A DNA stretch of 64,000 nt, taken from positions 52,018,001-52,082,000 of the forward strand of contig OZ076421.1 of NCBI GenBank assembly GCA_964187785.1. Reading direction: 5' to 3'. Both the position numbers and the translations under genes were made by a program. Positions 4,231 through 46,154 of this stretch are shown here, in pieces (position 1 is the first letter of the stretch; every line of letters starts with the position of its first letter). The DNA is from Amphiscolops sp. MND2022. Lineage: Eukaryota. Below the pieces are notes generated by a model. It saw nothing but the letters and a program-made list of their open reading frames with translations. It searched no databases and was not told the origin of the DNA.

Positions 4231-4922
4231 ATTTGCAACTGATATCGCTTGGATGGCCCAGTCCCACTAACCGTTCCCCCTTATATTCATCCGCAACCCT
4301 TCTGTGTTTCAAGCCCACCTGCTCGCATATGCCCACCCGCTTTGAGGCTGCCACACTTATTGCCTGTTCCCATCCATGACCCTGATGCAAGGCCCAGAAA
4401 CATTGGGGACAGTTGTGCATGTACCTCAAATGAATCCACATGTGGATGGTGACCATGAATGATATATTGCTATCATTATTAATACTCACAAATTGCAGGC
4501 TCTTGCTAGTCCACCTAGCCACAGCGGTAGAGCAGACCCACGATCCGCCACGGCCCCTCGAAGAACTTGCATATCCCGACAGTGCCACGCTTCCTTGTTG
4601 TAGTGTATCGGCTGTAGTACATTTTCCAACTGTTCTAAAGTTGGTACTTTCAATCCGCCCCATAATAACCCCCCGTCCTCTCGGACACTGAATTGCATGT
4701 CTTGCAAAAATGAAAGTATCATGTTTTTCCTTTTTGAAGGATGTGTTGTGATCCCTATGAAGACTATAAAATTATGTTATGCCGCTAATGGTTGGTTGTC
4801 TAGTTGTTGCGCAAATTCTTTCGGGAAAATTGAGAACTTTAGCCAAAAAAATGTCAAAAATATAAATCCGAAAAACATTGAGGAATTTCATTGTTAGACA
4901 ATAAAAATCAACAAAAAATTAC

Positions 4923-5110
4923 CTGAACATTGGGGTGATTGAATTGTGCCATGATTGCGGCTTCTATGCAGGTGCTACGCACACTCTCTGAGTCTGAATT
5001 ATGAATGGACTTGACGAGCACAGCACAGCTCTGATTGTCAGTGCCATGTTAAGTGGCCCTGCACACCTGTTGACCACACGCAGTAGAGGTGGCTTTGAAC
5101 CCACCATCGT
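4923..5110 (-). pseudogene. Tyrosine-kinase N-lobe exon (Eph-like) with an in-frame stop
   Basis: tttcag acceptor (5116-5111) and gtaatt donor flank a 188-nt exon encoding ...AVLVKSI...CIEAAIMAQFNHPNVQ (VAVK Lys, alphaC Glu, HPNV). TAA at 5049-5051. Confidence 0.65.
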
Positions 5111-5971
5111 CTGAAACATCAAAGTGACGTCATTATTACATCATATTCACAACCGCTTTTAGTCTGAAATGTTGCCCAAATGGGAACTTTTGATACGTTT
5201 TTCCCCATCATGTTTACCCATTATTCGAATAGCCTTTCCATAATTTAACAAAATCTGAGATTTTGAATCCACGGAAAAGTTAAATTGGCTCATAGTTAAT
5301 CGATTAAAATAATATATATTAAAAATATGATTATGTTTATGAGTGACGTTCATGACAATTGTAGCCCGCATTTTTACTCAACGAACGCACATATGAGAGC
5401 AATCAAGTGCTTGAATTTTCGCTTCAACATTTTTGCAAAAAACTAAAAAAAATTTTAGAACAAAAGTAGTTAGCGAAATGCCGATCCGGCTCAAACAACA
5501 AAAAAATTCAAAAACTCAAAAGGCCCCCTTTTAAGGCATTTTTCCATAACAAATCATCAAAATTAGCGTTTTTTCACAACGATAAGAATCTGAGATTACA
5601 TCAAGACAAAATGAGAACAATTTTCAAAGCCGCCACACCATGTGCATCAGTAGTGTGAAAAATTCTAATACTAACATGTGTATTATTTGAATAATTCGAA
5701 TTTCGCGCGTTCCTAGGTATATCTAAGCAGACGGTTGTCTAAAAAATTCTCCTAGTCTGACCTTGAGGTGCAATTGGAAATGCACCAAAAAAATTTTTCA
5801 CTTTTCTCTTAACATTCACAGTGAACAGCATGGCGAGGTATAACTCAACGAATATTTGAGCTACAACAAAGTATAATATACCATTGAAAAGATCTCAATA
5901 AGGACTGCCTATCTCGATAAGTTTCGAAAACAGTTTCATAAATGAATGAATCGAAAAAAAATTACTATTAA

Positions 5972-10132: not shown

Positions 10133-11316
10133 TTTGAAACCGTTTGAAAAGAAATGCATTATCAAATATCTGGAAAAAGCATCATGTTAGTCTCGAAGAA
10201 GGAGAATTTCTTACATGAAATTATGATGTAATTCCCAGAAAGCACCATGAGTAAATTTTTTGTTCGGAAATTTTAGATAGTAGACGCGTAGCGCCACTTT
10301 CCACTCGATTGATACCGTATTGATCCAAACCATTCGGAAATACATGATTACTAATCATATATTTAGTAAAGAAGCAAGAACTGACACAAGTAAAAGAAGC
10401 ACTCAAACTCTATTAGAAACAAAACGGCCCATTATAAAGAAGCATTAAACAATCGGACCTTAGTTAGTTTTTTTTTACCTCACCGCCCCTTAAGGCAGAT
10501 CTACACCTTTCGCCTCGGGTTGACATTCGCAACCGTCAGCGAGGTCCATGGGACCCCCTCTGAAAAGAACAGGGCAAAAAATACTTGATTGTGATGTGCT
10601 ACAGCCTATCCTAAACCTAAAACCTTTCAAAAATGTGAAGCACAAAAAACATGTCAGACTTATTATAATCTTTTCCCAAAACTTATTCAAAAAATACCGC
10701 TTCATAACATTCACGCACGTCCGTCATCTGAGTAATTATATAAATTACATTTTTGAAAATGTTTAAAAAATGTCACTGCCTTCCAAAATCACAAATACCG
10801 GGCGTCTGGTCAACCGACTAGAAAAAAAGTTTGCCATAATGCAAATTCAAAGAACAACCTAGCTATCTCAGCGGCAAAACACTACTTTGGTTAAAGCCAA
10901 AAACGTCTCAATGCTCAACTCCACTTATTCTCCACTAAGTAAGGAAAAACAACGGTTAGGTTTCAGAATAAAGTCAATTAAGTCTCAGTCTTAAGGTCTT
11001 TTGGTCAAAAAGTCGAAGTAGAAAAAGTCGGTTTTGGGAAAGTCTGGTTTTGGTATGATTTCTCACTTTTTAGGATTTGACGATCTTTATTTAAGTAGAG
11101 TGTGTCAGCGTGGTAAGCTCAAAGAGTACACGTGCTGCCACACTGGTTATATGGTTTGATGGTAGTTTTTTTAAAGTTGTGTATAAGCTTGGAAGGAGTA
11201 CACAAGCTTTTACACTGTTAGTCTTTCGTCTAGATTGTAGTCATCTGTTCAGTCCGTTACGTCATTGTTTGTCATCGTCCAGCAAACCAACATAATTAAA
11301 CCCTACATTTTGTTTT

Positions 11317-11641
11317 AAAACCTAATGTGGAGAACAACACACGTTCACTTTCCGAGTAGAACAATGTGCTTTCCCGTAAAACCTTTACCCGGTACTTCAC
11401 AAGGCGGGAACCACGCTCATCGTCGATTCCACCAAAAGAGCAACATAGCTCGAAATTACATACAACATCGCACGGTGTCCACCCTGTGTAGTAGAACTTT
11501 GTGCCATATTCTACAGTGCCTACTTTTACATTTTTACAGAAAATTAGATGTTGTTTCAAAACCTAATGTGGAGAACAACACACGTTCACTTTCCGAGTAG
11601 AACAATGTGCTTTCCCGTAAAACCTTTACCCGGTACTTCAC
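11317..11641. repeat. 241-bp tandem duplication whose second copy is split by the LINE
   Basis: AAAACCTAATGTGGAG...GGTACTTCAC occurs at 11317-11400 and 11558-11641. The continuation AAGGCGGGAACCACG follows at 11401 and resumes at 13901. Confidence 0.9.
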
Positions 11642-13890
11642 TTCTTCTTCTTCTTCTTCTTCTTCTTCTGTTTTATCTCCTTGCGGATCAGTATCGGTTC
11701 CGTTTGTCTTCTTCAGTCAACTGAGGGTTTTGCATTTGTTCGTTGCTTGGTGTCTTGACATGTTTGTAAGCGCTATCAGGGAATCGCATCTCAGGCAGAC
11801 TCCTTTCTTCGGGACGTATTTTCGAGCTGAAGGCAAGTCTTTCTGTGATGTTTCGAGGCACTTTTTCATGTGGTTCTTCAGTGTGGCTTCTTGTGTGAAA
11901 GTCTTGCCGCATTTCTCGCATTGAGTTTCTTTTTGTTGCGAGTCGTGAAGCCTTTTCCTGTGTATAGCTAGGCCTGCTTTGCTTCTGCACACTTTGTCAC
12001 AATTCTCGCATTGAAGGGTGTTTTCGGTTGGTGTTTTCGTCGATTCCCTTCTGTCTCTGATGATTTCATCGGGTTGGATTACGTGGTTTTGGCCTTGCTG
12101 TCTCTCATATTCTTCGAGGTGTTTTACTCTGTTCCGTACGAGCGCTCTCCACTTGGTTCGATCGGTTATCAGGTGTTCAATATTGTTGGGATCCTCGCCG
12201 GCTTCATTGATAAGTTTGCGCCAGTATGTTATGGTGTTTCTGTGTGGGAGTTTTTTCGTCTTATTCTCTTCTTCTAGTTTGCTGTACCATCCTAGCACTG
12301 CCTGTTTCACCAACCTGTCATCGTTCATTCTCAGAACGTGGCCCATTCTTAGGAGGTGAGCTTTATCTATCTTCGTTCTGAGAGATGTTACATTCAGTTG
12401 TTCTCTGATGTCCGCCATATTTAAGTGTTTCTCTTCCATCTGGCGTAGAGGTTGGCCATTCTTATCGCTCCAGATGTATCTATATCTCTTGTCCATGAAA
12501 GTTTGCATCCTTTTGATCTCTTTCAGCTTGAACGGGCGAACCGATGCATTGAAGAGCATAGTGCTCTCTATGCAGGCTTCCACTACTTTGGCCTGTGTTC
12601 GCTTGGTCAGACGACATTTCAGGAACCTCCTTTTGATGGTAGCCCAGTTCTTTCCCGCCCTTTGGATGCGTTTCGTTGTGTCACTATTGTTCTCCATCCA
12701 CGTTCCAAGCATTCGAATTTCTGTGTTGTTCTTCTCGTCGCCAAAAACCATTTTCTCCTCTTTGTCTAAGTTCGTTTGTTCTTCAAACTCGAGGAGACAT
12801 CTTTCCACTATCCTCTTTCCCTCTTCTACTTCATCGTTGTGACCGATTACTGTTGTATCATCAGCGAAGAGAGAGAGCGTGAAAATTTTTTGGCTTGCAT
12901 CCGAGTTTTGTTGACCTCTGCGTTGTGGAGGAAATCTGTTTCCTGGTAAATACGACCATCTGATCCCGCATTGTTTTCCATTTTCCCTGGCAGCTTCCTC
13001 CCGCTTGCTCTCTGCTATACGAATAGCTGCTTGGTGATATATGTTGAAAAGTGCGGGTGAGGTAGCACACCCTTCCCTCAATCCTCTTTCTGGGTAGAAT
13101 GCTGTACTCACACCCTCCGCACCTTTGACCTTGTAGCTCGTGTGCTCGTGGAGGTCCATTAGTTTGTTTATTATGTTCTGTGGCAGTGAGTATCTTCTCA
13201 GCAGGGCCCAGAGGATCGGCTTGTTTACTCGAGGGTATGCCTTCCTCAGGTCCAGTAAGATGGCTTCTGCGTTGTCCGTGACATTTCTCGACCTTTGATA
13301 CTGTTTGATGTCCTCATTTATTCTGACGAAAATCTGTGTGGCGTCTGCGGTAGAGCGGTCAGCCCTGAAACCTGCCTGGTTCTCATCGAGAAGGCTGAGT
13401 TGCTCGGACCATTCTCGTATTCTCGTGGCAAGGACTCTGGCCAGTATTCTGCTCATAATCGGAAGTAGACAAACTCCTCTATAGTTGTTCATGTCCTTTT
13501 TGTCACCTTTTTTATAGAGGGCAATTATTTGTCCGACTTTCAATGATGCCGGCCACTCTTGAGCTCTATCTTCCCACATGCATTGTATTTTCTGGATGAT
13601 GACTCGTTTGACCTCATCGTCGGCTTGTTTGATGAAGCGAAGTCTTATTCCATCTTCACCTGCCGCCGAGTCTTTCATCTTGTTCATTTCCGCTATTATC
13701 TCGGGCGCCGGTCGGTTCGCCTGTTTTCTTTTTGAAGAGGTGGACTGGTCGGCTAATCCAGCTACCCTCTGTTCCGGAGAGGCTCTTCCAGTTAGTACCT
13801 GGTATGTGCCCCCCAGCCTGAAATTCTTTTTGTCGTCAGAGACGTCCACTAGGCACCATGCGAGGAGGTTGAATTTCATCGCCCAGTCCT
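11642..13890 (-). mobile_element. 5'-truncated RTE-like non-LTR retrotransposon
   Basis: 10-bp TSD GGTACTTCAC (11632-11641 and 13891-13900), (GAA)n 3' tail at 11642-11669, and an RT ORF with no APE domain in this copy. Confidence 0.92.
11717..13890 (-). CDS. LINE reverse transcriptase with C-terminal zinc fingers (5'-truncated ORF)
   Basis: NYRGVCLL, QAGFR, DLRKAY, GLREGC.TSP.LF, LFADD, LG, then CENCDKVCRSKAGLAIHRKRLH and two more Cys/His knuckles. The annotated GTG start lies in the TSD and is artefactual. Confidence 0.92.
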
Positions 13891-13982
13891 GGTACTTCAC
13901 AAGGCGGGAACCACGCTCATCGTCGATTCCACCAAAATAGCAACAAATTTTAACATTTTAACCGTTTTACATTTTAAATTTT

Positions 13983-14421
13983 TTATGTCGACTGCATTTC
14001 ACCGCAAACACAAAAATGAAGATTACAGTTTTTCTCGTTAACTTTTTCCTGGAAACGTGATAGCATGTCTTTCAAATTTTTCAAATCGTTATGACGAACA
14101 CGCATTTCTCGATGTAATTCTTGTTCAAAGTCTCGGCGCGAAAAACGTGATGAAAAATTGCAAACAAAAGCAGCGACTGCCCAGGGCAAACGGTGGGGTT
14201 TTCTCGTGAACTCTGAACCGTCGCCGCAGTTATGTTCCGACAACCGTGTTAACAGCGCGCGCTCAGTTTCTCCTACGTAAAAAGTTTCGGGCGAAGTCGG
14301 GTTCAGACTAATCAAAAGATACACAAAGCCATTAGGAGTGCTTGGGATGTTTTTGTTAAAAGGTACGTAAGATAATTTCGAGATGTTGATTGGCTGAACG
14401 CTGGAATTGCACCTTGAGTTG
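13983..14421 (-). CDS. GIY-YIG nuclease domain, C-terminal part of the transposase
   Basis: GFVYLLISL...FYVGET...TRLSEHN.G.GS.FT...RLPW...DFE (SLX1-like pattern). The frame stays open upstream into the helicase end. Confidence 0.8.
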
Positions 14422-16145
14422 TTTTTAAGATGGATATGATGGCACTTAATGTCACATTTTTGTTACCAACAAAAGTAAGGTTTTTTAATTGTTTGACACG
14501 ACTGACAATTACAAAAACTTGCGACGTCATCCACAAAGCGTAGCTGCTGTCGGTTGCGGAAATGGACGTCGCCAGCTTTTCAAACGTGTCACCCATGAGT
14601 TTGTGCGTTGTCATGGCAACAAGGTTCATGAGCGGTAACTGTACCCCTCGCACTGAGTTCTTCTTGAAAGGCTGAACTAAGCCGGTGTGCTTTGAGAGAG
14701 TCACAGTCCGCCAAGTCAGGTACTCCTCGCGTTCCAACATCCCAGGAGTGATGTCAACTTCCCCACCACTGCTATCTGGGACGTAGATTGTGACCGAGTC
14801 ACCAGTGGGAACCTCGTGAACTACACCAACCTGACCTTGAGACAATTGCTCAGCTTCCAGATTCACTGTGACCCTTACCAAAGCCTTTGAGTAAACAATT
14901 AACTGTTTGAGCTCGTTTACCTTGTCGCTGAGATGGTTACTTACTTGTCGAGAGTCAGTCTCACTCCACACTGAGCTCTTCGAAAGACAGATCTCATCCT
15001 TGGCTTCAAAAATGCGGTAGGATGATCCCGACGCGCGTACTCGCTGAATGTGGCTATCGAATTCTTTCTGTTCAGTTTTCCGTTTGCCAAAAACCCGCAT
15101 TACACAAGGGTCGTCCAAGTCATCCCAGCTGTCCTTGAAGGTGCACTTAGTGTCCAGAATCGCGAGTATTTCAGCGACAGCAGGTTCATTTATGGGACGT
15201 TTCCACATGTGTCGAAGTACAGTTTGACCGTCTGCATCTGTCATTCGAACAAAGTGCGACAAAAAGAACATTGCGAAGTTTGTCAATAGAACAGGACTGA
15301 GGAAGATGTCGTTCCCTTCGATTGACGGCAGCTGCATCTGATCACCACTCGCGATCACTAAAACCCCACCGAAAGGCAAGGTTGACTGCTTCAACTCTTG
15401 AAGTTTGTGGTCCATGGCAGACCACTGTTCAGCACTGATTAGGCTCACTTCTTCCACGAACAGTACTTCCAGGGCCATTAACAGCATCTTCTTGTCATTC
15501 CGGTGGTCCAGTTTCACGAGAGCTTGCTCGGCCATTTTGATCGGTGATCCACAAGAAGAAGGAGGCAAGCAAAACAATTTGTGAATGTGCTCACCGCCAA
15601 AGTGCATCGATCTTCGGGATGCTAAACTAGTTACAAGACAAAACAACCCTTTCGTGAGCGCATAACCCAAAGCCATCGTCAACACATACGTCTTACCTGT
15701 ACCTGGTGGACCCAAAATCAACTGGTGTTTCCTATATTTATGGTCAGAAAACGGATTTTCACAAATTAGTTCTTTCAGTTGTTCTAAAATTATGGTCTGT
15801 TCTTCACGAGACTCTTCAGACTGGAAATTGTTTGGAACAAGTTCACCAGACCAGTCAGATGGTGTTTCTCTGGACACATTTTCAAAAAGGCTGGAATTAG
15901 GAAAATTGGGCCAATTTTTCTGAGTTAAACATTTTATGATGTTTAATTGGGACTGCCGAAGCATCTTTTTAGCCTTATCTTCCAATGCTTCAGTCAAGGT
16001 ATCCATCTTTGTAATGGGCAGCCCTTCATTATAAATGTCATTATCTATTAACATTCCCTTGAATGCTGACTTTGCCGCCAGTAGATTGTTATCAAAAGAA
16101 CGCGTACCGCCTGGTAGGTATCGCAATTGCTCGAGTACATATTTT
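14422..16145 (-). CDS. PIF1-family SF1B helicase domain of the transposase
   Basis: GPPGTGKT, FVEEVS, FGGVLVIASGDQMQLP, VRMTD, QLPL...TTHKLMGDT, FVIVSRV. Confidence 0.9.
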
Positions 16146-18955
16146 TTTCAAAATTTCATTGACATCATTTTCATCGTATACTTGCTTGTCTGGTACAACC
16201 CCGCCCTTCACGTATGCATCCTTCAAAGTTGGCACATCAAAAAGTTCAAATTCAGTTTCGAAAGCAGCGTTGGACAGTAAAAAGTGAATGAGAAAATTAG
16301 CAGGATTGCGAGGATACACTTTTGAAAAAACAACCTCTGCTGGTGTATTTGACAAATTTGGGTCACTGGATACAAAAAGAGACCGTCCCGGATGTGAGGA
16401 AATGTTCAAAACTTCAGAAATTATAACGAAGGCATCGAGCAGTCTACTATCGGTTAAATTTGCCGCTAAAGATTCTTGGACAGCAGCTGAAAATTCGGAA
16501 ACTGCAGAAGGTCTTAAACGAATGGCATAATTTTCACCATCCACCCAAGTTGATTCCCTAACGTCGTTTTTCAAAAATCGTACACTGACAGTCTCCCTTT
16601 TACCGGACAATTTTTCGCGTTTAAACCACCTGAAGTAGGGTCTTAGTTTGTTTACAAAAAGCAATTCAGGAGGACGTAGAGAAAAAACAGTTACTTTGTC
16701 AGTACTAAATGGCGTTTTGTTGACACTTTCTAGAACAATTTTTTGGCTCCTAGTAAAAAGTCGATGACGTGGTAACCTCAAATGATGTTCCCTGATCTCA
16801 CATGGACCTTCGTTGGCCACACCTGGTATATTTGTTCTTGAACAAGTATTATTTTTTCTTTTCAAAATGACACCTCCCCGATTTTCTAAAGCTACTGTTG
16901 GGACTGAAACAAAATCCATGGTTGTTATTACAGTTGGTAGTTGTAACATCCATGACACACATTCTGTACTTGCAATGGTGGTAGAATTTATGATACCTTG
17001 CGTTTTATCCTGCTTCGCTTCTCGAGCAAGGATCTTTCTAACACCGCCTAACTTTTTGTTTTCAATTTTTTGAACCTGCACATTTAAGACATTGTGAGCA
17101 TTTTCTGGATTGATGGCCACATCAGCATGCTCTTCTTTTCCAGCAGCGTACGATGTCAAGTACCTGGATGCGACCGACTTGCAAACCTTTAAAACGTTCA
17201 AACTGGATTTACAAATACTCCAGAGGGCAACCTTCAGCGGTGACATGTGCTCTCCTCTGGTGGCCGCATACATGTATTTACCTGCCATTAGAGTTGTTGT
17301 AACCTGCAAACACCTATCAAAACCAGGCCTCGGTTCAGCCAAATCAATTTCCTGTAATGCTACTACGGCTTCTTCCGAATGTGGCTGGTGGAACTCTTTG
17401 TACCAGGGAACGTTACTTTAATGGATAGGGCGGGAAACGACACTTTCGCTCGCCGTTCAACCTTACTTTTTTAAGACAGTGCCCTTTCTCACAATCATGA
17501 CTTTGAATGCGAATACAATCGTCGAATAACTTACCTGCATGCTTCTCACTATCAACAGTTCCGAAATTCATTTGAAACAATTTTTTAAACTCATGGAGGA
17601 CGTGTTTGTGTGCACATTGAATTTTCTCGATGATGTCCTGTGTTGAATTTTTTAACCAAAAAAGAATATGATAATGTTGCAGGTTGGCTGCTGCACTTTG
17701 AAATTCTGCCCTACCCCAAGTTTTAATAATTTCACCCAAAAGGTGTTCGTCTGAAAACCTTAAGTAGTCAATCAAAAGTTCGATAGTCCTAGTCCAGCAT
17801 CTCACACTGATGACCATGTAAGCCTGGAGTACTTCCTTCAGTTCTTCGGTGGTTGCGCTGCCGTACTGTTCGTAGATTGCGTTAACGACCTCAGCAACAC
17901 CAGGGTGTTCTTTCTGGTTACATGTAAAAGTTACAAAAAGATCCGGTGTTTCAGTGGCACAAGCAGTTCCTAATCGATTTACATGAACGTCGCTGTCGAC
18001 GCTATCCATTTTAAGAACAGACTCTGTTGATGTAAGCTGCTGAGGTCTGTACTTACCAATAGTGATAGTCTGCAGCCCACGTTTGAAAAATTGATTTGTG
18101 TGGCACTTTACAAGTGACAAATTTAAAACACAGTCAAAAGCATACATTATATAGACCAAATTCGAAGAAGTTAAAAGCGTACCATCCTTAAGTCTTAAAC
18201 GCATGTGTTCATGCAAAACATCGAATTCTAATTTGGAGTTTGCATTTTTATCGTCATACAAGAAAAAAGGCAGAGCGCCAGGGAACGAACCGTCTTCTAA
18301 GTGCTTGTAAAAAACGTTTGGGAACAGACACGCTTCAGGTTGCATCAGGGGGATAGAACGACCCGGCAGTGTGTAAACGAAATTTTGGAAAAAGCGTTGG
18401 AATTTTTTGCCTATGTGGGAGGGATATTTTAATCTTTTAAGTAGTTGACATTCACCATTTAAAAGTACATGCATGGGAACGAAATTAGAGTCATTGGACA
18501 AGTAAACGGGCTCACAGCCAGCGTCCGTGGCAAAAGCATCAATTTCTTGGAACCCGGCATCCACAATTAATTGTGGGCAATCAAACTCATCCATGTTGGC
18601 TTCCGGTTCTTGTGGTCCCTGTCGGTCGTCCAGCACGAAGCTCGGACCTGGCAAATTGTTTTCAGTCTGATCTTGTTCTTCAATCAAAAAAGCTTCCTCG
18701 TCACTGCTGTCTTGGATGGTATCGTCGGACGGCGTGTTGTCGACCAAAACCTTATCGTTAGTGTCACAGAACTCGCGGAAATGAGTTTTACAAACGGACG
18801 CTAAACAATTCTTTTCCGGACAACGCCAAGCAGACTTCCTAGTACAGATTTGCTGATCACCGGTGTTTTTAGGCATACTACATTTTCGTTGGCTTTTAAA
18901 ATAATCAGTAGATAGAGGCAGGTTATGTTCATTACAGAAATAAATTCCTTGACCC
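16146..18955 (-). CDS. HUH/Y2 Rep endonuclease region of the transposase (frameshift at about 17418)
   Basis: Motif 1 PDLFVTFTCN, motif 2 AEFQ...LQHYHILFW, QSHDC...CRFP, motif 3 SRYLTSYAAGKEE (YxxxY). Confidence 0.9.
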
Positions 18956-21046
18956 CCGTGTATTTTAAGTATCGCAGCTTAGTTTCTTCAGTCAAGTCTG
19001 TTTTAGAAACGTAAATTAAAAAGTCCCATGTCCTATTATACTGGTATTCCAAAGTTGGATCCTTCACGGCTCGGCTTCCGTCATTCTTTATGGTCCAAAA
19101 ATTGAAAAAAGGATCTCCGTGCCTCAAACTCACCTTACCTTCAGCTGAGATGATAACAATTGAATGTTTTTACCATTAATGGATGTTAAATTAAAAGGAA
19201 TCTGACTATCCCTAGATTGAACATCGGAGGCAACGACTAAAATTAGATCGTTTCGGGCACAGTCAATCCTAACAGTGTCAACATTACCTCTGTGACAGTG
19301 CACGACGTGACAACCTTCTAACAATTCACAAAAAGATACCAAAGGTTCTGCTTGAGGAGGAAACAGTTCAGCGAAGGCACTCTGCAAGCAATTAAATAGT
19401 GATGAAATTGTGTGGTTATATTGAAAACTTTTCTTTCCTTCAAGTCGTTTCAAAATTTTACAAATTTGAGAAATGTGATCATTTTCGTCGCAAAGCTGAC
19501 ACATTTTATACCATAAAGAATCATTGTTTAGAGAAGCATGCGCAAAGACAAAAATGTTATTTTCTTGTGAAACACCTTTGGAGAACACTGATGGTTCAGA
19601 ACCGTATCCATCTAATCTGTGACCGTATACCAAAGGTTTTTTATAGTCATCACGATTTGTAACATCTTCTGGGCAAGTTTCTACATAGTCTTTCATGCGC
19701 ATCAGTGTGTTCATGTTAAAAACAATAGCGTTTTCACAATGCTCTTCGATTAATGACAAAGAAACTGGCAATTCAAACCCCAAGAAAGCTTCAGCTAAAG
19801 TATCACTAATTTCTTGATTTTGACAACAAACCCTAATGATTTCTTTAACATCGCTCCTACAATTTATCAAAAGTTTTTCCATGTTTTGTTGTAAGTAATT
19901 CAAAGGGCATTCGAAATTCCTGAAATTATGTAAAACAGTAGAACTAACTCCACTTATGCGTCCACTGTCAACCCGACACATAGTGAAGGTAGCACTTTTT
20001 GCGCCAATTTTGAGAGGTCTTACAGTTCTGACACTTGAAACCATTAGAGCTAACCTGTCGACGAACTTGGGGCTGATGTTACCTGCCACTGGATTAGTCG
20101 GTACATGCACATAATTAAGTAAAACACCGTTCTTATGGTCCGAACATACAACTAATTGCAAACCTTTTTCTTTGCAAATTACACATGGTGAAACGGGAAA
20201 TTTTTCTAAGAGAGTTAACGTTTTAGTGAAATCATCTCGAGCTCCTTTTAGAAATTTTTTACTGTTTGCATTAAAGCTAGTGAATAATGGAAAAAGGTAA
20301 TTCAAAAAATGGGCAAATGAAATTCCGTTCGATTTTTCGACGAATTCAAAGCATCCTGCAGGGCACCTAATGTTAGGAAAGCAGTGTGTAGTTAAAGCTT
20401 TTACAAGTGTTTTAGCAGTTCTAGTGTTAATCAAATTCCAAAAGTCTTCCTTTTCTGGGGTAATATCCCTGAATACAGAATCTGTAACGGAAGTCGTAAT
20501 TAATGGGTGAACAGTATTCATGTTTCGTTTAAAAGATTCCTTAATTTCATGTGGAAGTAGTTTATAGAGTTTCTCAGCGTTAGAGTTGAACCTATGTGTG
20601 TCAAAAAGTAGAGTATACATAACGCTGGGCCAAGCGTTTGGCCAGTCTTTGTGACGAGTAGTAGTATTGTTGTTGTAAGCAAGACAATGTTGACAGAAAG
20701 TGATTGTATCAGTAGTCATCTCAGTCACACGTTTACCAAACATAGTCGTATGAAGTGAGACACGTTGTAAAGTTTGAAAATCAAGTCTGTAATTGTTTGT
20801 GCTCGTCGGGCAACATTTATCACACATCTGCTCTTCTGACATCTCCACATCATTGGGGGCATCTGGGGGATTGGGGACATTGATCGCTACGACATCTTGT
20901 TCGTTAACATCTTGTTCTAATTCAATTCTCTGACTCTCCTGACATCTTGCACAGACTCCATCCGCTGTTATGAAAGTATTGTGAATCTCACATCTTCGTC
21001 TCCGGTTAGAAATGCTGGTTTTCCGTCTCCCTCTGCCACGAGGCAT
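18956..21046 (-). CDS. Cys/His-rich N-terminal extension of the transposase (frameshift at about 19169)
   Basis: ATG at 21046 with a basic leader, several CxxC/CxxH clusters, and no stops once single-base shifts at 19167-19171 and 18953-18957 are allowed. Confidence 0.65.
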
Positions 21047-22773
21047 TGTGGACTTTTAGCCTCTTTGATAGCCAAGCAATACAAGTTAATGTAGGCAAAG
21101 CAGATCAAAGCAATTCAAATCAAATCTGGAAAAACGCTGATCCTGATAGACATCATCAGAAAAAGTCACCATTTTTGACACATAACAAAGATTGCGTATA
21201 ACTGGAAACACGGTTGCACTTCATTTTCACCTTTGCCAGCATATTTACCGAGGATTACCTGTTTTACCACTACTTTGTGCAGAACACCTAATCACCGACC
21301 ACGCTTTCCGTCGATCGATGATCACCATTTCTACTCAACCCACGAACTTACCAGACGTAACCTGTAACCAAATACTAACTGTTTGCAGAAAAAGAGAACT
21401 CCGACACCTGGAAAAAGAAAAAAAATTAGTTGGAAATAATATGAATTCAAAACCTACCTAAACTTAAAATGTCATAAGTCAACGTCAGGTTCAGCTACAG
21501 AGTCTTATAATAGCTCGTTTTTCTCGTTCACTCGAGCACTTTCCACTAGCATCCACTTGCAATACTAATTGTGTGGAAGTTTTTTACCTTTGGGAGGCCT
21601 GAAAATGAAAAAAAAAGTTTTTGAAATTTTTTCGGAAAAATTCTAAGTCATTTTACTTTTACCCGGGGAATCCTGGAACGCTGAAACTGCGGCAAAAGGG
21701 CCAAATGATTTTTTGGGAGGTAAACCGGCCAGGGGAGGCCTTTAGGAGAGGTCCCGGAAAAAAATCTGGGCAAAAAACGGCAAAGATAGAGTAGGTTCTC
21801 GAAAATTTGCGAAAAAATGCGTCCGAATTCCGGCTATTACTCAGTCAATTTTATTTCGATCTGGACGAAAATTTGTCTACGGACTCCTTACGAAGTGCCC
21901 AGCAAAATGGACGTCCACATGCGAATCGCTCCGGGCACCTGGGGGCGAGATATGGGCTCTTGAAAAAAAATTTCGAAAAAATGCCATTTTTCGACTAAAA
22001 AACTAAGATTTTGACCCACATTCTGCGTTTTCACAGCAAAATGCCAGAAGGGATTAGTTCTTAGAGTTGTTATAGGAAGCCGTATGCAAAATTTCAGCCA
22101 AATCGCGGAGCTGGAGATCGGGGTTAGACTCCCGTTTGTGCCTTACGTTGAGTGTCGTAGGTATCCGACATTTTGGCTCGGGCAAGGGGCCCTACCCTGC
22201 CCTCGAAGTGTTAAGCAAATCGATGGATTATGGCACCTAGACGTGTACGGCTGATAAGAGAGTCAAGAAGGCAGGAAATGTTCAAAAAAGAAAGTTACTC
22301 ACGTGATTGGAGAAGTAGTCGTCAGTCGAGTGTTGGTTGAGAGGTTAATTAGTGGTTAAGGATGTTCAAGAATGTGGAAGTGTTGTCGTTACATTTTCGA
22401 AATTTTAAGAAATAAGGAATTTAGGAAAAAGAAAAGTGGAACCACGCTCATCGTCGATTCCAGCAAATGTGTATCTCCCTCAATGCTACAAATTTCCTAA
22501 CTGATGTAAACCTAAATACCGTATATTAAACTTTAATCAAAATTCATTTTTAAAGAAATCGCTTGGTAAAGTTTAAAAAATTTCAGTTCGCCCAGAAAAA
22601 ATATAATTTCAAATTAATTCTGGTATCAGTTTCACGTTCGGGTAGAAAGTTAACGATTTTCAAAGAAACACAATCGATTTGACAAATTAAGTTCAATTGT
22701 GGAGAGTGGCTGACGGCTCTAAGGGCGACAAGTCACTCAACCGCAACAGCGCTCAGAGAGTTTGTGTTTTCAT

Positions 22774-23843
22774 TCATCCACACTGTGAAGCAGTTTCACC
22801 CTTGTAACACAGGGCAGCTTGTGCATCTGTTATTTGCTCTTAGGCAGCAGGGAGCAAACGTGGAATCGCTTGCTCTCCACGGTTGTGCCGTCATCATCCA
22901 CTGCAGGCTTAAACCAGCCTATTATTCGAAACCACCCCCTGAATTGATAGCCTGTACCATTTTTCGAACACTTTCATCCAACTTGAACCGATCAAGGAGG
23001 TCCGAATCAGGTTTCATTGACTTGACGTTGGCGCTCACGAACACCATTGTTGTGGAATTTGAATAGAGTTCTATTAAGTCTTCGTTTTTAGTTGCCTCCG
23101 TGATTTCTGGACACCTGAATTCAAAAAGCAGAGACCATGTTTTTTTAGGTCAGGCCTCAGTGCACGGACATTGGTCATGATAATTTTGCGTCGCACACGT
23201 TCTCACTGCAGACGTCTTCGGCTATGACGGCTGAGTCCATAGCGAGTTTTTTCGTAACAAAATTAAAGAAACGAAATTCGGTAGAGTTGCCCTCAACGTC
23301 ATAAGGTGGCAGCGTTTTGGCATTGTTTACGGATGTGGTCGGAATCAGAGGTTCCTTTGTACTGATCAAGGCCGTGCCACCACGACTCAGGTTACCCTCC
23401 ATCGTTGGTTTCAAAATCTCCACTTGGCAGCCAGGAGACAAGGCCTCGTGGTACCGGAATAATCTTCTGGTTTCCTCTGAGTTTGCAGAGAATAGTGCCA
23501 GAACCGTTGAGGATCCGGGCACTCCAAAAACCACGAAGCGGTTGTAATTTTCCACTTCAACCTTCCGACTACTGCCAAAATTTTTGCTGGATTTCGTATT
23601 CATTAGTTTTCTCGTAGGCTGGGTTGCATATAGGTAGGTGGCTTTTATTCTATGAAGTCTCGGATTGTTGCTGGTTGAGGACTGCAATTGGTCAACGGAA
23701 ATAGTTTCAAACTCTGGCAACAAGGCCTGCGCTTGGGTCACCCTCAAGTTAGATTTAAAGAAGCCGGGCATTACGGAATCTGGAAAAATGGCAAACCGGT
23801 CTCTTCGAGGTCTTAAAATAACAACCGTGCCGATCTCTGTCAA
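22774..23843 (-). pseudogene. OB/Zn-ribbon-like accessory protein, full length but disrupted
   Basis: 222-aa ORF continues after a frameshift and stop as CPCTEA*PKKTWSL...DRFKL...GWFKPA...KRFHVC, colinear with 35914-36906. Confidence 0.75.
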
Positions 23844-30345: not shown

Positions 30346-30839
30346 ATTTCAGCTGGAAAACAAGTACTGATTAAGTGGGCATTGAACGGAAGACTTCGCT
30401 TCAGAGATCATTGATTGTGAATCTACAACCTTTCAACCTACAACCTTTTACCTTCAACCTTTCAAGAAACATGAATTATGAAAAAGATGTATTATTTATT
30501 GATTTAGTAATCGGAATTTGCTTTTCTTCTCGGTGTGGTCGTTCTATTATAGATATTACTTTTGTAAATATTATTTAACCTCATCTTCCGTTTCTTCTTA
30601 TCTTCTTCGTCTAGTCGTTTTATTATAAATAATAATATTATAAATATTATTTAACCTCAACTTCCGAATCTTCTTTTCTTTTTCGTCTGGTCGTTCCATT
30701 ATACATATTACTATTAAAAATATTATTTTGTCTCATCTTCCGAATCTTTTTTCCTTCTTCGTCTGGTCGTTCTATTTTAAATAATACTATTATAAATGTT
30801 TTGTACCATCTTCACAATCTGTTCTTTTTCGTCTGGTGC

Positions 30840-33800
30840 TGCATTAGTTCATGTGCGTGCTGAAACAGAACAAACACCCTTTCTGCCAAATACTGAATAG
30901 TTTCTGCCAAATAGTTTTAATGCTGAACTTCACTTTACCTGAATCTCACTATTGTAGGAAAACCATGGTTAGGTTTTAGAATAAAGTCAATTAAAGTCAG
31001 TCTTGAAGTTTTAGTCAAAAAGTTTGAAGTTTTCAAAAGTCTGTTTTGGGATGTCTCATTTTAGTTGACAAGTCGCGTTTTTGGATTTTTCATCTGATCT
31101 ATTGTTTAAGAATTGTGCATCAACATGGAAGATTATGTAAAAATATATTTTGGTTTGAGATTTGAAATCAAGTGTCTTCAGCTTTTTAGTACCCTAGTGA
31201 ATGATGCATTTTGATCTGTAGCTTAGCTGAACATGTCTGTATCTTCAGAAAAACGTCAGACTCTTTGTATGTTTTTTAGATTGGAAATCCATTGAAAGAT
31301 GCTAAAAATTGTGATTCACTAGTTGTTCAGCTGTAGTGAATAATGTCACTTGATGTGTGAATAAAAAGTTGAGAGGGATATAATATCCTAAATGATGTGC
31401 TGAAAATGGAACGTGAGGGGTACGCTTGCGTTTTTCAGAATGGACGAAAACTTTCAGCAGACAAACTTTAACATTGCATGCTTTCGATCAAAATTCAGTT
31501 AGAAACAAGACTGGAACGTCTCAAAGCGGCACCCTTTGCTGATACAATTTTGTGATAATAAAAGTCGGAGGATTTCGTTTACATAGTTTTAAACATGCAT
31601 TTGACCGATTTCCGGGAAATCCGCGGATATGATTTGCGTGTATTTGAGCCTTCTGGAATTGCGAAACTTTCAGTGAATGACATTGGTAGGGTAATGCCTC
31701 AAAAAAGCGCAAGGTTTTTGAATCATGCTCGTGAGAAGGTTTCATGCGAAAATTCTGGAAATTTTTACTGTGTCACTCCTGTAGCACTATCTTCCTTGAA
31801 GACCACTGTTCGACACTGATCAAGCTCAATTCTTCCACGAACAGCACTTCCAGGGCCAGGAGGAGAATCTTTTTTCATTCCTGTGATCGAGTTCAGTCAA
31901 CGCTTGTTCAGCCATCTCTATCGAGCCGCAAGATGAGGGAGCGAGCAGAACAACTTTTGATTGTGCTAACCGATAAAATGCATTGACCTCCTAGAAGCTA
32001 AACTTGTTATCCGACAAAACACTTTTGAAATTTGCATAACTCTAAAGCCATTGTCAATAGTAAGTCTTACATGAATCCGGGGACCTAAAATTAAATGATG
32101 TCTTCTAAACGTGTGATCAGAAAACAAATTCTCACAAATTAGTTTTTATTATTTCTAGAAAAATGACTGAGGATTAGTTCTTTGAATAGCTTAAGGAAGT
32201 CTTATGCCAACTTTCAGCCGAAGCGCGGGGCTCGTTCAGAAGATCGAGAGGAGACTGCGCGAAAGGCCTTATGTTGTTTTTTTTCCTAATCTTCCGATTC
32301 TTCTTCTTCTGATGGTTCTATTATAAATATTACTATTGTAATTATTATTTAACATCTTCCGATTCTTCTTCTTCGTCTGGTCGTTCTATTATAGATAATA
32401 TTATAAATATTATTTAACCTCATCTTCCGAAGCTTATAATTTTCGTCTGGTGCTGCATTAGTTCATGTGCGTGCAAAAACAGAACAAACACCCTTTCTGC
32501 CAAATACGTTCTAATGCTCAACTCTACTCAACCTGAATCTCACTATAGTAGGAAAAACGATGGTTAGGTCTTAGAATGTCTCATTTTAGTTGACAAGTCG
32601 CGTTTTGGGATTTTTCATCTGATCTTTTGTTTAGGAATAGTGCATCAACATGGAAGCTTATGTAAAAATTTATTTTGATTTGAGATTTGAAATCCAGTGT
32701 CTAGCTTTTTAGTACCCTAGTGTATGATGCATTTCGATCTGTAGCTTAGCTGAACTTGTCTGTATCTTCAGAATGACGTCAGACTATTTGAATTTTATTT
32801 AGATTGGAAACCCATTGAAAGTTGCTAGCAATTGTGATTCACTAGTTGTTCAACTGTAGTGAATAAGGTCACTTGATGTGTGAATAAAAAGCTGAGAGGT
32901 ATATAATATCCGAAATGACGTGCTGAAAATCGAACGTGAGGGGTACGCTTGCGTTTTTCAGAATGGACGAAAATTTTCAGCAGACAAACTTTAACATTGC
33001 ATGATTTCGATCAAAATTCAGTTAGAAACAAGACTGGAACGCCTCAAAGCGGCACTCTTTGCTGATACCATTTTGTGATAAAAGTCGGAGGATTTCGCTT
33101 ACATAGTTCTAAACATGCATTTGACCGATTTGCTGGAATTCCGCGGATATGATTTGCATGTGTTTGAGCCTTCTGGAATTGCGAAAATTTTAGTGAATGA
33201 CATTGGTAGGGTAATGCCTCAAAAAAGCGCAATGTCTTTGAATCATGCTCGTGAGAGGGTTTCATGCGAAAATTCTGGAAATTTTTACTGTGTCACTCCT
33301 GTAGCACTATCTTCCTTGAAGACCACTGTTCGACACTGATCAAGCTCAATTCTTCCACGAACAGCACTTCCAGGGCCAGGAGGAGCGTCTTTTTTCATTC
33401 CTGTGATCGAGTTCAGTCAACGCTTGTTCAGCCATCTCTATCGAGCCGCAAGATAAGGGAGTGAGCAGAACAACTTTTGATTGTGCTAACCGACAAAATG
33501 CATTGACCTAGAAGCTAAACTTGTTATCAGACAAAACACCTTTCAAAATTGCATAACTCTAAAACCATTGCCAATAGTAAGTCTTAGATGAATCCGGGGA
33601 CCTAAAATCAAATGATGTCTTCTGAACGTGTTTTCAGAAAACAATTTTTCACAAATTAGTTTTTATTATTTCTAGAAAAATATCAGTGAGGATTAGTTCT
33701 TTGAATTGCTTGAAGTCTTTTGCCAACTTTCAGCCAAAGCGCGGGGCTCGTTCAGAAGATCGAGAGGAGACTGCGCGAAAGGCTTTATGTTGTTTTTTTC

Positions 33801-35400
33801 CTAATCTTCCGATTCTTCTTCTTCGGATGGTTTTTTTATAAATATTACTAATGTAATATTATTTAACCTCATCTTCCGATTCTTCTTTTCTTCTTCGTAT
33901 GGTCGTTCTGTTATAAATAATGATATTATAAATATTATTTAACCTCATCTTCCGAATCTTATAATTTTCGTCTGGTGCTGCATTAGTTCATGTGCGTGCT
34001 AAAACAGAACAAACACCCTTTCTGCCAAATACGTTTTAACGCTCAACTCCACTCAACCTGAATCTCACTATAGTAGGAAAAACGATGGTTAGGTCTTAGA
34101 ATGTTTCATTTTAGTTGACAAGTCGCGTTTTGGGATTTTTCATCTGATCTTTTGTTTAGGAATAGTGCATCAACATGGAAGATTATGTAAAAATTTATTT
34201 TGATTTGAGATTTGAAATCCAGTGTCTTTAGCTTTTTAGTACCCTAGTGTATGATGCATTTCGATCTGTAGCTTAGCTGAACTTGTCTGTTTCTTCAGAA
34301 CAACGTCAGACTCTTTGAATTTTATTTAGATTGGAAACCCATTGAAAGTTGCTAAAAATTGTGATTCACTAGTTGTTCAACTGTAGTGAATAAGGTCACT
34401 TGATGTGTGAATAAAAAGTTGAGAGGTATATAATATCCTAAATGACGTGCTGAAAATGGAACATGAGGGGTACGATTGCGTTTTTCAGAATGGACGAAAA
34501 CTTTCAGCAGACAAATTTTAACATTACATGATTTCGATCAAAATTCAGTTAGAAATAAGACTGGAACGTCTCAAAGCGTCATACCCTTTGCTGATACCAT
34601 TTTGTGATAATAAAAGTCGGAGGATTTCCCTTACATAGTTCTAAACATGCATTTGACCGATTCCCGGGAAATCCGCGGATATGATTTGCATGTATTTGAG
34701 CCTTCTGGATTTGCGAAACTTTTAGTGAATGACATTGGTAGGGTAATGCCTCAAAAAAGCGCAATGTCTTTGAATCATGCTCGTGAGAGGGTTTCATGCG
34801 AATATTCTGGAAATTCTTACTGTGTCACTCCTGTAGCGCTATCTTCCTTGAAGACCACTGTTCGACACTGATCAAGCTCAATTCTTCCACGAACAGCACT
34901 TTCAGGGCCAGGAGGAGCGTCTTTTTTCATTCCTGTGATCGAGTTTAGTCAACGCTTGTTCAGCCATCTCTATCGAGCCGCAAGATGAGGGAGCGAGCAG
35001 AACAACTTTTGATTGTGCTAACCGACGAAATGCATTGACCTAGAAGCTAAACTTGTTATCAGACAAAACACCTTTCAAAATTGCATAACTCTAAAGCCAT
35101 TGTGAATAGTAAGTCTCACCTGAACCCGGGACCTAAAATCAATTGATTTCTTCTAAACGTGTGGTCAGAAAACAAATTCTCACAAATTAGTTCTTTCATT
35201 ATTTCTAGAAAAATGTCAGTGAGGATTAGTTCTTTGAATAGTTTGAGGAAGTCTTATGCCAACTTTCAGCCAAAGCGCGGGGCTCGTTCAGAAGAGCGAG
35301 AGGAGACTGCGCGAAAGGCCTTATGTTTTTTTTCTTATCTCGAGCAGGGCCCTACATCGCCCTCCAAGTTTTAGCGGACAGAAATGGAGCAATCACCTAG
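30840..35400 (-). repeat. Three tandem mosaic units of about 1.53 kb (helicase fragment + spacer + SGNH-upstream region)
   Basis: The landmark GACCACTGTTCGACACTGATCAAGC lies at 31801, about 33320 and about 34853. Each unit has the FVEELSLIS helicase segment and about 76-bp subrepeats. Confidence 0.9.
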
Positions 35401-35913
35401 ACGTGCACGGTTGAACGGAGAGAGTCAAGAAGGCAGGAAAGTATTTCAAATGAAGTAAAAAAACAGTTACTTACGTGATTGGAGAGGGATCGTCTTCAGT
35501 CAGGTGTTGGTTGATAGGTTAATTAGTGGTTAATGATGTTCAAGAATGCGGTAGTGTTGTCGTGACATAAATGTTCGCACATATTCCAATTGAGTTTTAG
35601 AATTTACTTTAGTTTTTTTACATTCTCCTAAAATCCTACTTTGATTTCATGTCTACCTATTAACTGCTCACTCAGTGGCTTATTTGAAAAGAACAGTACC
35701 AGGTAGAAAAAATGCAATTAGTTCATATCTACCTTTCCAAATTTCCTTTTACCTGTGGATTTCGTTGTCAATAAAAACAGAAATTACCGATAATATGAGA
35801 TCAAGAACAAGAGTATTTTGAGTTTAAATTGTGGTGAATAGCCGAGGTCTCACAAGGACCACACACTATTCACCACAACAGCGCTGAATGTAGCTAGTAT
35901 TCACTGCATCACA

Positions 35914-44619: not shown

Positions 44620-45580
44620 TCTACTTTTTTCTCCTAAAGTTAAGGAAGTACTCATTCAACATAAAAATTAACACTCGCTCTAAGTCTATACGGGAACATT
44701 CGGAGTCAAAATTACAAACAAACGCGGCAATGGCACATGGTAACCGATGCGATAAATTTGTGAAATTTGATCCGATCCATTTCCGCAGTTATGTTCCAAG
44801 AAACGTACTAAAAGGCGCGTTTAGTTTGTGACCTACTTAGAAAGTTTGAGGTGAGCACTGGTTGGCACTGATTAGCAAATAGACAAAACCATTAAGTGTT
44901 TTCAGGTATTGTTTTAATAAAATGAACGTAGGACTTTCTAAAGATATAAATAGGTTTTACAACAGATCGTTACCTTGAAATAGTTCTTATTTTGTCAAGT
45001 AAAGTCAACATTTGTTCTTCGTTTCGATCCTTTCCCTGGAAAGGTGTTTTTTCAAGGCGCCCATCGTAGCTGTTTCATCTCCGACAAAAGTTAGTTTGTT
45101 TCACAAAAGTTTCACACGACTAACAATGACGAAAATTTGCGACGTCATCCATGAGACATATCTCTTATCCGTTGCCGAGATGGACGTTACCAGCTTAACA
45201 AACGTATCACCCATTAGCTTATGTGTTGTCAGAGCAACAAAGTTCATTAGGGAAATCTGGGTTCGTCTAGCGGTTTTTCTTGAACGCTTGTACAAAGCCA
45301 GTTTGCCTGGTTAAAGTCACACTCCTCCAGGTCAAGTATTTTTCGCGTTGCAACATCTCAGGGGTTATGGTTACCTCACCACTGCTACTATCTGGGACGT
45401 AAGTTGTGACTGAGTCACCTGTAGGAACGTGATAAACAACTCCGACCTGTCAGTGGGAAATTTGCTCAGATTCCAAATTGACTGTGACCCTAACTAAAGC
45501 GTTTGGGTAAACAATTAGCTGCTTAGTTTAGTTTACCTTGTCGTTCAGATGGTTAGGGACTTGACGAGAGGCTGTCTGAC
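44620..45580 (-). pseudogene. Second helicase-C-terminus + GIY-YIG remnant
   Basis: THKLMGDT...IFVIVSRVK...TFVG, then PIYIFRKSYVHFIKTIP and GFVYLLIS...HRLPCAIAAFVCNF. Confidence 0.8.
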
Positions 45581-46154
45581 TTAGACGTGGACGGCTGATA
45601 AGAGATTCCAGAAGGCAGGAAAGTTAAAAAATTAAAATACTTACGTGATTGGAGGAGGATTGATTGCTCTTTATCAATCGATGTTGGTTGAAATGATAAT
45701 TAGTGGGTAATGATGTTCACGAATGCGGAAGAGTTGTCGTTACATTAATTGTCTCGAATTCGAAATTCGCAAACCTGGACCCAAGCTCATCGTCGGATCC
45801 ACCAAATGAGGCTGATGTAATCTAAGTATGCGGGTCTTCAAACAGCGGTAACTACCTGAATAATTGAAGAAAAATAGTTGTCGATTGAAAGAAATTTAAT
45901 TGCTTCTTCTGAGGTGGGTATTCCTTGTAATTTTCCATGAAAGTTATTTTCGCTCATCATTCCAACAAAATGTAATGAAAAAATCAAACACAAAAGACAA
46001 CATGTTTTGTTGACAATTTAAGTTGTAATTAATGCAAGCATACCAAAGCACTCAAGATCTCTCGATTAGCTTAACCTAGCAGCGCGAAATAACTCTGCTG
46101 CAGGTACTACTCACGGAAAAAAGTTATTAGCTGTTAATATTGTTCTAGAAGTTG

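Follow-up and report, generated by a model that had tools for sequence, protein, structure and literature searches.

A Helitron-like transposase gene fused to a predicted SLX1-type GIY-YIG nuclease in the genome of Amphiscolops sp.

In a stretch of 64,000 nt from Amphiscolops sp. MND2022 (GCA_964187785.1, OZ076421.1:52,018,001-52,082,000, forward strand; hereafter the window, to which coordinates refer unless another locus is named), a decayed gene on the minus strand at 13986..21046 encodes a Rep-helicase (RepHel) transposase that ends in a GIY-YIG nuclease domain. Its identity as a Helitron-like transposase and the genuine nature of its fusion with the nuclease are very probable in our judgement. 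The fuller explanation that we favour, and which we consider probable, is that of a Helitron-like family with one open reading frame (ORF) of ~2300-2800 aa, in which a zinc module, Rep, a Pif1 helicase, a linker and an SLX1-type nuclease follow one another; that the nuclease nicks DNA for Rep is a more tentative part of it.

The window gene comprises ~2350 codons distributed over six overlapping open pieces, which span 21055->13986 on the minus strand in frames 2, 1, 0, 1, 2 and 1: A (21055-19133), B (19169-18804), C (18978-17416), D (17417-16095), E (16147-14315) and F (14462-13986). The five frame changes between them were mapped by comparing the window copy with two other copies and lie, on the same strand, at ~19157-19163, at ~18955 (a 1-nt gap relative to the copies L001 and L002), at 17422 (an extra base that splits the Rep core), at ~16143-16147 and at ~14414-14423. 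The homologous path through these pieces contains zero in-frame stops. Pfam searches with the pieces detected Helitron_like_N in C (E 3.8e-10), PIF1 in E (8.8e-12) and GIY-YIG (PF01541) in F (6.3e-7), and the domain order on the minus strand is an N-terminal zinc module, an HUH/Y-x3-Y Rep, a Pif1 helicase and the GIY-YIG nuclease. The preliminary description had announced colinear Rep, PIF1 and GIY-YIG domains over ~2350 aa; this is borne out by the Pfam matches and the motifs, although the five frame changes mean that the window copy is not one ORF. Since intact proteins of 2268-2777 aa align collinearly with pieces A, C, D, E and F (E 1e-16 to 1e-94), a chance origin of the domain arrangement is excluded.

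The extra base at 17422 is missing from high-depth short-read contigs of the same sample (four runs), but these contigs are collapsed close copies and show only that relatives are in frame at this position. At the ~18955 frame change, where the window copy, L001 and L002 all shift, an intron was considered and ruled out by the presence of three different small indels within 30 nt, and because the consensus runs straight through the conserved GGQ....C..H..PL motif. Each of the three copies carries its own 1-2 nt indel in this same 30-nt homopolymer-rich stretch (window 18930-18960, L001 7400-7430, L002 7940-7975), a cluster which may reflect either a site prone to mutation or homopolymer errors of long reads.

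The Rep core of the HUH-Y2 type (17148..17937, minus strand) displays 'FVTFTCN' (17937-17917), the HUH motif 'HYHILFW' (17676-17656) and the Y-x3-Y motif 'RYLTSY' (17165-17148). In the family consensus, GNLPHxHxxxW ... RYLAKY, both histidines and both tyrosines are invariant among 17 sequences, and the Rep profile aligns to the HUH motif (LPHAHILL) and the Y-x3-Y motif (KYLFKY, chain residues 697-746) of Helraiser with an E value of 3.5e-4. Pfam Helitron_like_N at E<=0.001 is reached by only four of the 19 full-length members. Annotation that relies on Rep profiles may thus often miss or under-count the family. The Pif1-family SF1B helicase core (14495..15712, minus) contains Walker A 'GPPGTGKT' (15712-15689), 'VEEVS' (15457-15443), 'GDQMQLP' (15346-15326), 'THKLMG' (14608-14591) and 'VSRV' (14506-14495). 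By profile it matches Helraiser and Pif1 structures at 1e-19 to 1e-28 (Helraiser 7.7e-27) and is equidistant from Helraiser and from cellular and bacterial Pif1. Of the features that mark Helitron-like elements at the superfamily level, HUH, Y-x3-Y and a Pif1 helicase placed C-terminal to Rep in the same protein are present, and the element is multicopy. It is the combination of HUH-Y2 with Pif1 that constitutes the Helitron signature.

Rep is preceded by ~1000 aa of family-specific sequence, within which a module of ~386 aa (19736..20893, minus) is kept throughout the family. Its cysteine pairs C24/C27 and C67/C70 as well as C177 are invariant, while C181, C250 and H263 are nearly so, and the invariant pairs suggest that the module probably binds zinc. 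The AlphaFold2 (AF2) model of the module is confident (predicted local distance difference test score, pLDDT, 81; predicted template modelling score, pTM, 0.77), and searches of Pfam, the PDB, AFDB clusters and the ESM atlas returned no match. A confident model that has no counterpart in the PDB, AFDB or ESM atlas may represent a new DNA-binding fold.

The helicase is connected to the nuclease by the linker PINISKLSYVPFNKNIPSTPN (14331..14393, minus; family consensus PF.P...P....G), which appears in the GIY reading frame as PINISKLSYVPFNKNIP from 14393 on. The SLX1-type GIY-YIG domain (14058..14330, minus) has the catalytic Tyr, Tyr, Arg, His and Glu all present, with the motifs 'GFVYLL' (14330-14313), 'FYVGET' (14282-14265), 'RLSEHN' (14246-14229) and, around the Glu, 'DFEQE' (14132-14118). 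A tail of ~25 aa follows, its last codon at 13986 and the stop codon at 13983-13985. Across 19 aligned GIY domains the Y of GxVY, the G of YIG, and an R, H, G, T and P are invariant, and the Y of YIG, a W and the catalytic E are conserved in at least 90 %. When the family GIY profile was compared with known structures, SLX1 came top (4xlg 1e-15, 7cq2 8e-15) and UPF0213 proteins next. The matches to SLX1 chains are confined to the nuclease domain, residues ~13-95. The AF2 model of the window domain (pLDDT 86, pTM 0.82) retrieved Slx1 and At-HIGLE first in Foldseek, with I-TevI and UvrC far behind, and the Slx1 match has a probability of 1.0 and a TM-score by query of 0.5-0.6. The SLX1-type label given to the domain at the outset is thus confirmed by profile (E 1e-15) and by predicted fold.

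With SLX1 and the bacterial UPF0213/YhbQ proteins the family shares the motif set GxVYLL...YIGxT..L..R...HN...RPW...GF...FE..W. SLX1 proteins act together with SLX4 through a C-terminal RING-type domain. In contrast, no RING/PHD-type zinc domain follows the nuclease core in the 19-domain alignment, where the proteins end ~40-70 aa later without a zinc-finger pattern, and the nuclease is tethered to a helicase rather than partnered with SLX4. In one lineage, that of P0175, the called ORF breaks off at 'AFIAG', within the GIY-YIG domain (L008 16790-16900). A segment of ~85 nt bounded by GT and AG follows, after which the family consensus is taken up again in register with 'GFPTDN...'; we regard this segment as a putative short intron in the nuclease.

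Evidence from the same assembly, drawn from ERZ25074608, includes copies in which these domains still lie in one ORF. One of them, P0003 (790 aa), belongs to the window's own lineage, carries PIF1 and GIY-YIG in one ORF and is 80 % identical to the window copy in protein and ~70 % in DNA. Uninterrupted ORFs occur in at least three other deep lineages, which are 30-35 % identical to the window copy: P0062, of 2455 aa, is present at three loci that are 98.8-99.5 % identical over 17-26 kb, while P0052 (2777 aa) and P0175 (2268 aa) are each a single ORF. In all three the GIY-YIG domain sits at the C-terminus. Intact copies had been named beforehand as a comparison that could refute the fusion, and in those of 2455, 2777 and 2268 aa the nuclease is part of the same ORF, neither a separate gene nor an independent insertion.

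In a broader survey, a phmmer search with the 159-aa linker and GIY piece against 1.8 billion representatives gave 309 matches, many of them proteins of 1664-3596 aa aligned at their extreme C-terminus. Pfam recognized GIY-YIG in 17 and PIF1 in 15 of 19 such long proteins. A query centred on Rep and helicase retrieved proteins of the tunicate Styela clava and the ostracod Cyprideis torosa together with many further contigs, and the family GIY profile was positive in 21 of the 24 long proteins newly retrieved in this way, the exceptions looking truncated. Relatives with the same domain order measure 2200-2800 aa in Styela clava and are represented by shorter gene models in Cyprideis torosa. The spacing is constant in the family (Rep to Walker A ~790 aa, Walker A to GIY ~470 aa), and nearly every long member keeps the linker and the in-frame C-terminal position, among lineages that are 24-35 % identical. 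In a helicase tree with only Pif1 outgroups the family forms one clade, in which all lineages of this assembly group together (100/98) and those of Styela and Cyprideis fall into another sub-clade. The preliminary description had also proposed a rolling-circle lineage that carries GIY-YIG where Helentrons carry APE, and the intact single ORFs, the conserved linker and spacing and the purifying selection described below support it. In the ESM atlas there are PIF1 and GIY-YIG clusters, one with diatom members, which we take as a lead only.

The nuclease domain has evolved in step with the rest of the protein. Between the window copy and L001, the ratio of nonsynonymous to synonymous substitution rates (dN/dS) is 0.08 for GIY, 0.06 for the helicase and 0.17 for the N-terminus, in a comparison where dS is saturated and dN amounts to 0.13-0.29. 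The value of ~0.08 indicates that the GIY-YIG domain is under purifying selection. Moreover, pairwise distances in RepHel and in GIY correlate (r 0.85), with none of 2000 permutations as high. Co-varying distances, low dN/dS and conserved residues together argue that the GIY-YIG domain shares both the descent and the evolutionary constraint of the remaining transposase. These comparisons indicate that the fusion is ancestral to a deep clade and has been maintained by selection, and that several lineages 30-35 % identical coexist in Amphiscolops.

The 2455-aa lineage, with its near-identical copies, is here called young. Its RepHel-bearing unit is 25.7 kb long (L004 753-26503), starts with YGGGGCGYTATTCCC (YGGGGCG...) and ends in GCGCTAGGTGGT. 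Three young copies share the exact 3' end, and their 3' flanks differ and begin with C or T. Young units stand head to tail with related units, with junctions of the form ...GGTGGT|YGGGGCG, and every 5' end of this lineage that was seen abuts the 3' end of another unit, which masks any target-site duplication. The 5' end forms a strong GC-rich palindrome; a clear terminal inverted repeat was not seen in the young lineage. The unit contains few other ORFs, among them an accessory gene with a weak OB-fold (oligonucleotide/oligosaccharide-binding) lead and a weak GDSL/SGNH-like gene (L004 22323-23177, Pfam E 0.009-0.03). At the window positions 25447-24810, upstream of RepHel, SGNH-likeness was supported neither by Pfam nor by tblastn with the L004 ORFs.

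What the nuclease might contribute to transposition is best considered from the limits of Rep. HUH domains cut single-stranded DNA only. In the case of Helraiser, the first tyrosine nicks single-stranded DNA at the 5' end, the helicase displaces the strand in the 5'->3' direction, and a cut by the second tyrosine at the 3' signal is followed by formation of a circle, which is then inserted. As HUH cuts single strands, the entry of Helitron-like elements into a double-stranded target is unsettled, and the APE of Helentrons hints at an answer. Because HUH cannot cut duplex DNA, we infer that the GIY-YIG domain could supply a nick in duplex or branched DNA, which would lie in the target or in the palindromic end signals of the element itself. 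Rolling-circle synthesis and strand transfer would thereby gain an exposed single strand and a 3'-OH. Such a task has been proposed for the APE of Helentrons, which occupies the same C-terminal position, and the GIY-YIG of Penelope-like elements performs it. Taken by itself the nicking role is tentative, and by analogy with these systems we would put it a little below an even chance. A second, unrelated nuclease fixed at that C-terminal site throughout a deep and widespread clade would point, by convergence, to a genuine need of some rolling-circle transposons for an accessory duplex or branch nuclease.

An unlikely but more substantial competitor than those discussed further below is that the GIY-YIG domain resolves branched intermediates, a role that the preliminary description had raised beside the nicking of targets. 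Its substrate would be the flap, fork or junction that arises at the exit of the displaced strand from the donor, or at the 3' signal, where rolling-circle synthesis has to end; cutting there would free the circle or curb read-through. The nearest relatives by sequence and fold, the SLX1 proteins, are structure-specific nucleases and neither homing enzymes nor UvrC. The long head-to-tail arrays and composite units make termination and resolution a live problem for this family, and the 5' palindrome of the young lineage is strong (-18.4 kcal/mol). However, the domain lacks the RING domain of SLX1 and the interface for the SLX4 partner. Abundant head-to-tail arrays, if anything, imply inefficient termination, and canonical Helitrons such as Helraiser terminate with the second Rep tyrosine alone.

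Several observations also weigh against the favoured explanation of a Helitron-like family whose own nuclease would nick DNA for Rep. The window copy is a dead, frameshift-damaged transposase gene, and the nuclease activity is predicted from sequence and modelled fold. Since the RING-type domain is absent, both activity and specificity may differ from those of SLX1. For the window's lineage, clean termini and a target site were not found, and its leader and 3' parts recombine in several arrangements. The 25-nt end motif of this lineage, described below, is thermodynamically unconvincing as a hairpin (z -0.66). Finally, replacement of APE by GIY-YIG and an independent deep branch are indistinguishable, the helicase tree having Pif1 outgroups only.

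That these are no transposon genes, and instead form a domesticated host family or encode the replication protein of a virus-like replicon that has integrated, is very improbable. Polinton-like and giant viruses do often carry helicases and GIY-YIG nucleases, some of the structural neighbours of the helicase in the ESM atlas are viral, the young unit has 25.7 kb and accessory ORFs, and the Styela clava members are annotated by NCBI as paralogous 'uncharacterized protein LOC...' genes and so pass as ordinary ones. On the other hand, the family occurs in many copies per genome that range over all stages of decay, among them deletion derivatives in which the leader and 3' parts are retained. Three near-identical copies have an exact common 3' end between different flanks, units lie head to tail, and neither capsid nor polymerase nor integrase was found among the ORFs of the 25.7-kb unit, and HUH-Y2 with Pif1 is the Helitron signature. 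Least probable of all is that the nuclease is a passenger, a host SLX1-like fragment captured once and without a role in transposition: Helitron-like elements are known to pick up pieces of host genes, and HELIANO (PMC11417382), in the part of that paper available, labels the GIY-YIG of the family HelenSM92 'captured', but the domain is in frame, in the same place and behind a conserved linker in nearly every long member of lineages only 24-35 % identical, its dN/dS is as low as that of the helicase, its catalytic residues are invariant or nearly so, and its distances co-vary with those of RepHel.

The ends and the domains of the family bear on its position among Helitron-like elements (HLEs). 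Canonical Helitrons (HLE1) have 5'-TC...CTRR-3' termini and a 3' subterminal hairpin and insert between A and T, while HLE2 elements have hairpins near both ends and short asymmetric terminal inverted repeats and insert between T and T. With the canonical Helitron Helraiser (PDB 7lcc) the family shares the alignable HUH and Y-x3-Y motifs and the helicase match, and its head-to-tail arrays and sharp 3' end with differing 3' flanks are rolling-circle hallmarks. However, the similarity in Rep is only at the level of motifs, the protein is ~1000 aa longer and bears a nuclease absent from Helitrons, and the young lineage has YGGGGCG...GCGCTAGGTGGT instead of 5'-TC...CTRR-3'.

Helentrons, or HLE2 subgroup b, are similar in that one long ORF runs from Rep to a Pif1 helicase and a C-terminal auxiliary endonuclease. 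Further likenesses are element-associated tandem repeats and OTU-like and RPA-like accessory parts, OTU being weak in P0052 and found in the precomputed annotation of the Styela protein P0177. The differences are the SLX1-type GIY-YIG in place of APE, the undetected DUF6570 and the family-specific N-terminus of ~1000 aa. By Pfam, APE (Exo_endo_phos, PF03372) is found neither on the window pieces nor in the 19 full-length members. DUF6570 (PF20209) was undetected at E<=1 in four N-terminal halves and 17 Rep regions, and likewise in the 19 whole proteins. By its ESM features the Rep piece comes closest to DUF6570 and Helitron_like_N clusters (0.85, weak), and the family may contain a very diverged DUF6570 homologue. 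In the portion of the HELIANO paper available (PMC11417382), DUF6570 N-terminal to Rep is proposed as an HLE2 marker, and the HLE accessory domains named there do not include GIY-YIG.

The nearest precedent is HelenSM92, an HLE2 family of the moss Sphagnum magellanicum, whose GIY-YIG domain is called 'captured' in one sentence and which has short terminal inverted repeats and T-T insertion, as far as the available part of the same paper goes (PMC11417382). Like the present family, it is a Helitron-like element, and it is reported to carry GIY-YIG beside RepHel. It is, however, one plant family, compared here by description only, whereas in our case the fusion is the hallmark of a deep clade found in several animals. 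No other report of a Helitron-like GIY-YIG was found in the open-access literature, where the RepHel-GIY fusion as a conserved multi-animal clade is almost unmentioned. Penelope-like elements offer a parallel from another class, for they too join a C-terminal GIY-YIG nuclease to the replication enzyme or polymerase of a mobile element, and the accessible text of one study holds that this domain enables integration within chromosomes (PMC8557442). The partner enzyme is a reverse transcriptase (RT) there and a Rep-helicase here, and the GIY-YIG of the present family is nearest to SLX1. The transposase ORF itself contains no RT; the adjacent one belongs to the unrelated insertion of a long interspersed nuclear element (LINE).

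Searches for HLE1 and HLE2 references with the helicase piece, the Styela Rep-Hel-GIY region and the Rep profile returned only family members and a few remote Pif1 helicases. It is a doubtful, though by no means negligible, proposition that the clade is a third major Helitron-like branch outside HLE1 and HLE2, characterized by the RepHel-SLX1 fusion, a novel-fold zinc module and composite units of ~25 kb carrying OB-fold-like and SGNH-like genes, and widespread in marine animals and perhaps diatoms. For experiments, the Amphiscolops genome is natural test material, with intact near-identical 2455-aa copies beside many dead ones.

In the window's lineage, a 5' leader extends upstream of the coding region (21047..22484, minus), and similarity to other copies begins at ~22469-22484. 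Between the adjacent copies in L001 the leader is 92 % identical (4535-5155 versus 17517-18139), compared to 67-68 % for their coding regions, which suggests that the cis-acting end is strongly constrained or exchanged. The leader contains, 5' of RepHel, the 25-nt motif TGGAATCGACGATGAGCGTGGTTCC (22438..22462, minus) with an inverted repeat of 6-8 bp. The same motif recurs as TGGAATCGACGATRAGCGTGGTTCC on the 3' side (13907..13931, minus), where it ends 52 nt past the stop codon. It is also present at both equivalent places in L001 (the 3' one at 12396-12420) and after the transposase gene in L002 (12861-12885), and the window holds six matches where none is expected. The motif is a candidate for a Rep recognition or termination signal. 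A strong hairpin within it was rejected, as its folding energy of -4.1 kcal/mol is no better than that of shuffled sequences. At L001 17340-17600, directly upstream of a leader, four of these motifs stand in a row with a period of ~52 nt and resemble minimal head-to-tail 'end-only' units.

Just past the 3' motif, a 5'-truncated non-LTR (long terminal repeat) retrotransposon fragment with RT and C2H2 fingers has been inserted (11446..13891, minus). Direct repeats of 54 nt (13945-13892 and 11445-11392), which differ by one base, border it on both sides, and its RT lies at 13900-11717. A reading of the RT gene as cargo of the element was given up for that of a LINE insertion that produced a 54-nt duplication. 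In L002, ~50 nt of LINE 3'-end sequence occur twice right after the motif (12910-12961, 13084-13129), which raises the question whether the LINE targets the 25-nt motif. Beyond the insertion the 3' region of the RepHel unit resumes (10878..11391, minus); it matches L002 13193-13587 at 93 % and L001 12721-13100 at 82 %, and similarity to other copies ends at ~10878.

The diverged second copy reported in the preliminary description is real, although decayed and internally deleted (44669..45823, minus). A leader (45823-45579) is fused to helicase aa 395-570 (45581-45053), followed by the linker and by GIY aa 37-116 (44914-44669), with two 25-nt motifs after them (44266-44190). As had been stated, the helicase C-terminus and 'NGFVYLLIS' share one frame; the linker 'PIYIFRKSYVHFIKTIP' is in another, and there are several in-frame stops. 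Three chimeric units of ~1.5 kb (31776..35574, minus) consist of a leader piece joined to a helicase fragment (aa ~119-255), the fragments being located at 35214-34828, 33662-33296 and 32145-31776 on the minus strand, with a further one at 399-23.

Upstream of RepHel, an accessory ORF (23184..23771, minus) has no Pfam match. Its homologues adjoin RepHel in every lineage examined (L004 18034-19755, L009 6562-7551, L001 16010-17047), and further copies occur in the window at 36900-35932, 29789-29231 and 1885-1445. The proteins of this family have 330-574 aa and are 21-30 % identical between lineages. Language-model features give a weak OB/RPA/POT1 lead, and the product is possibly an OB-fold binder of single-stranded DNA. 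Higher-order tandem arrays take up the final 16 kb of the window (48141-64000) and recur at 30514-30797; their units measure ~1.55 kb and ~1.3 kb and are themselves made up of 77-nt sub-repeats. The array sequence directly follows the RepHel unit in L001 (13030-15994), and given this adjacency the element family seems to seed satellite arrays.

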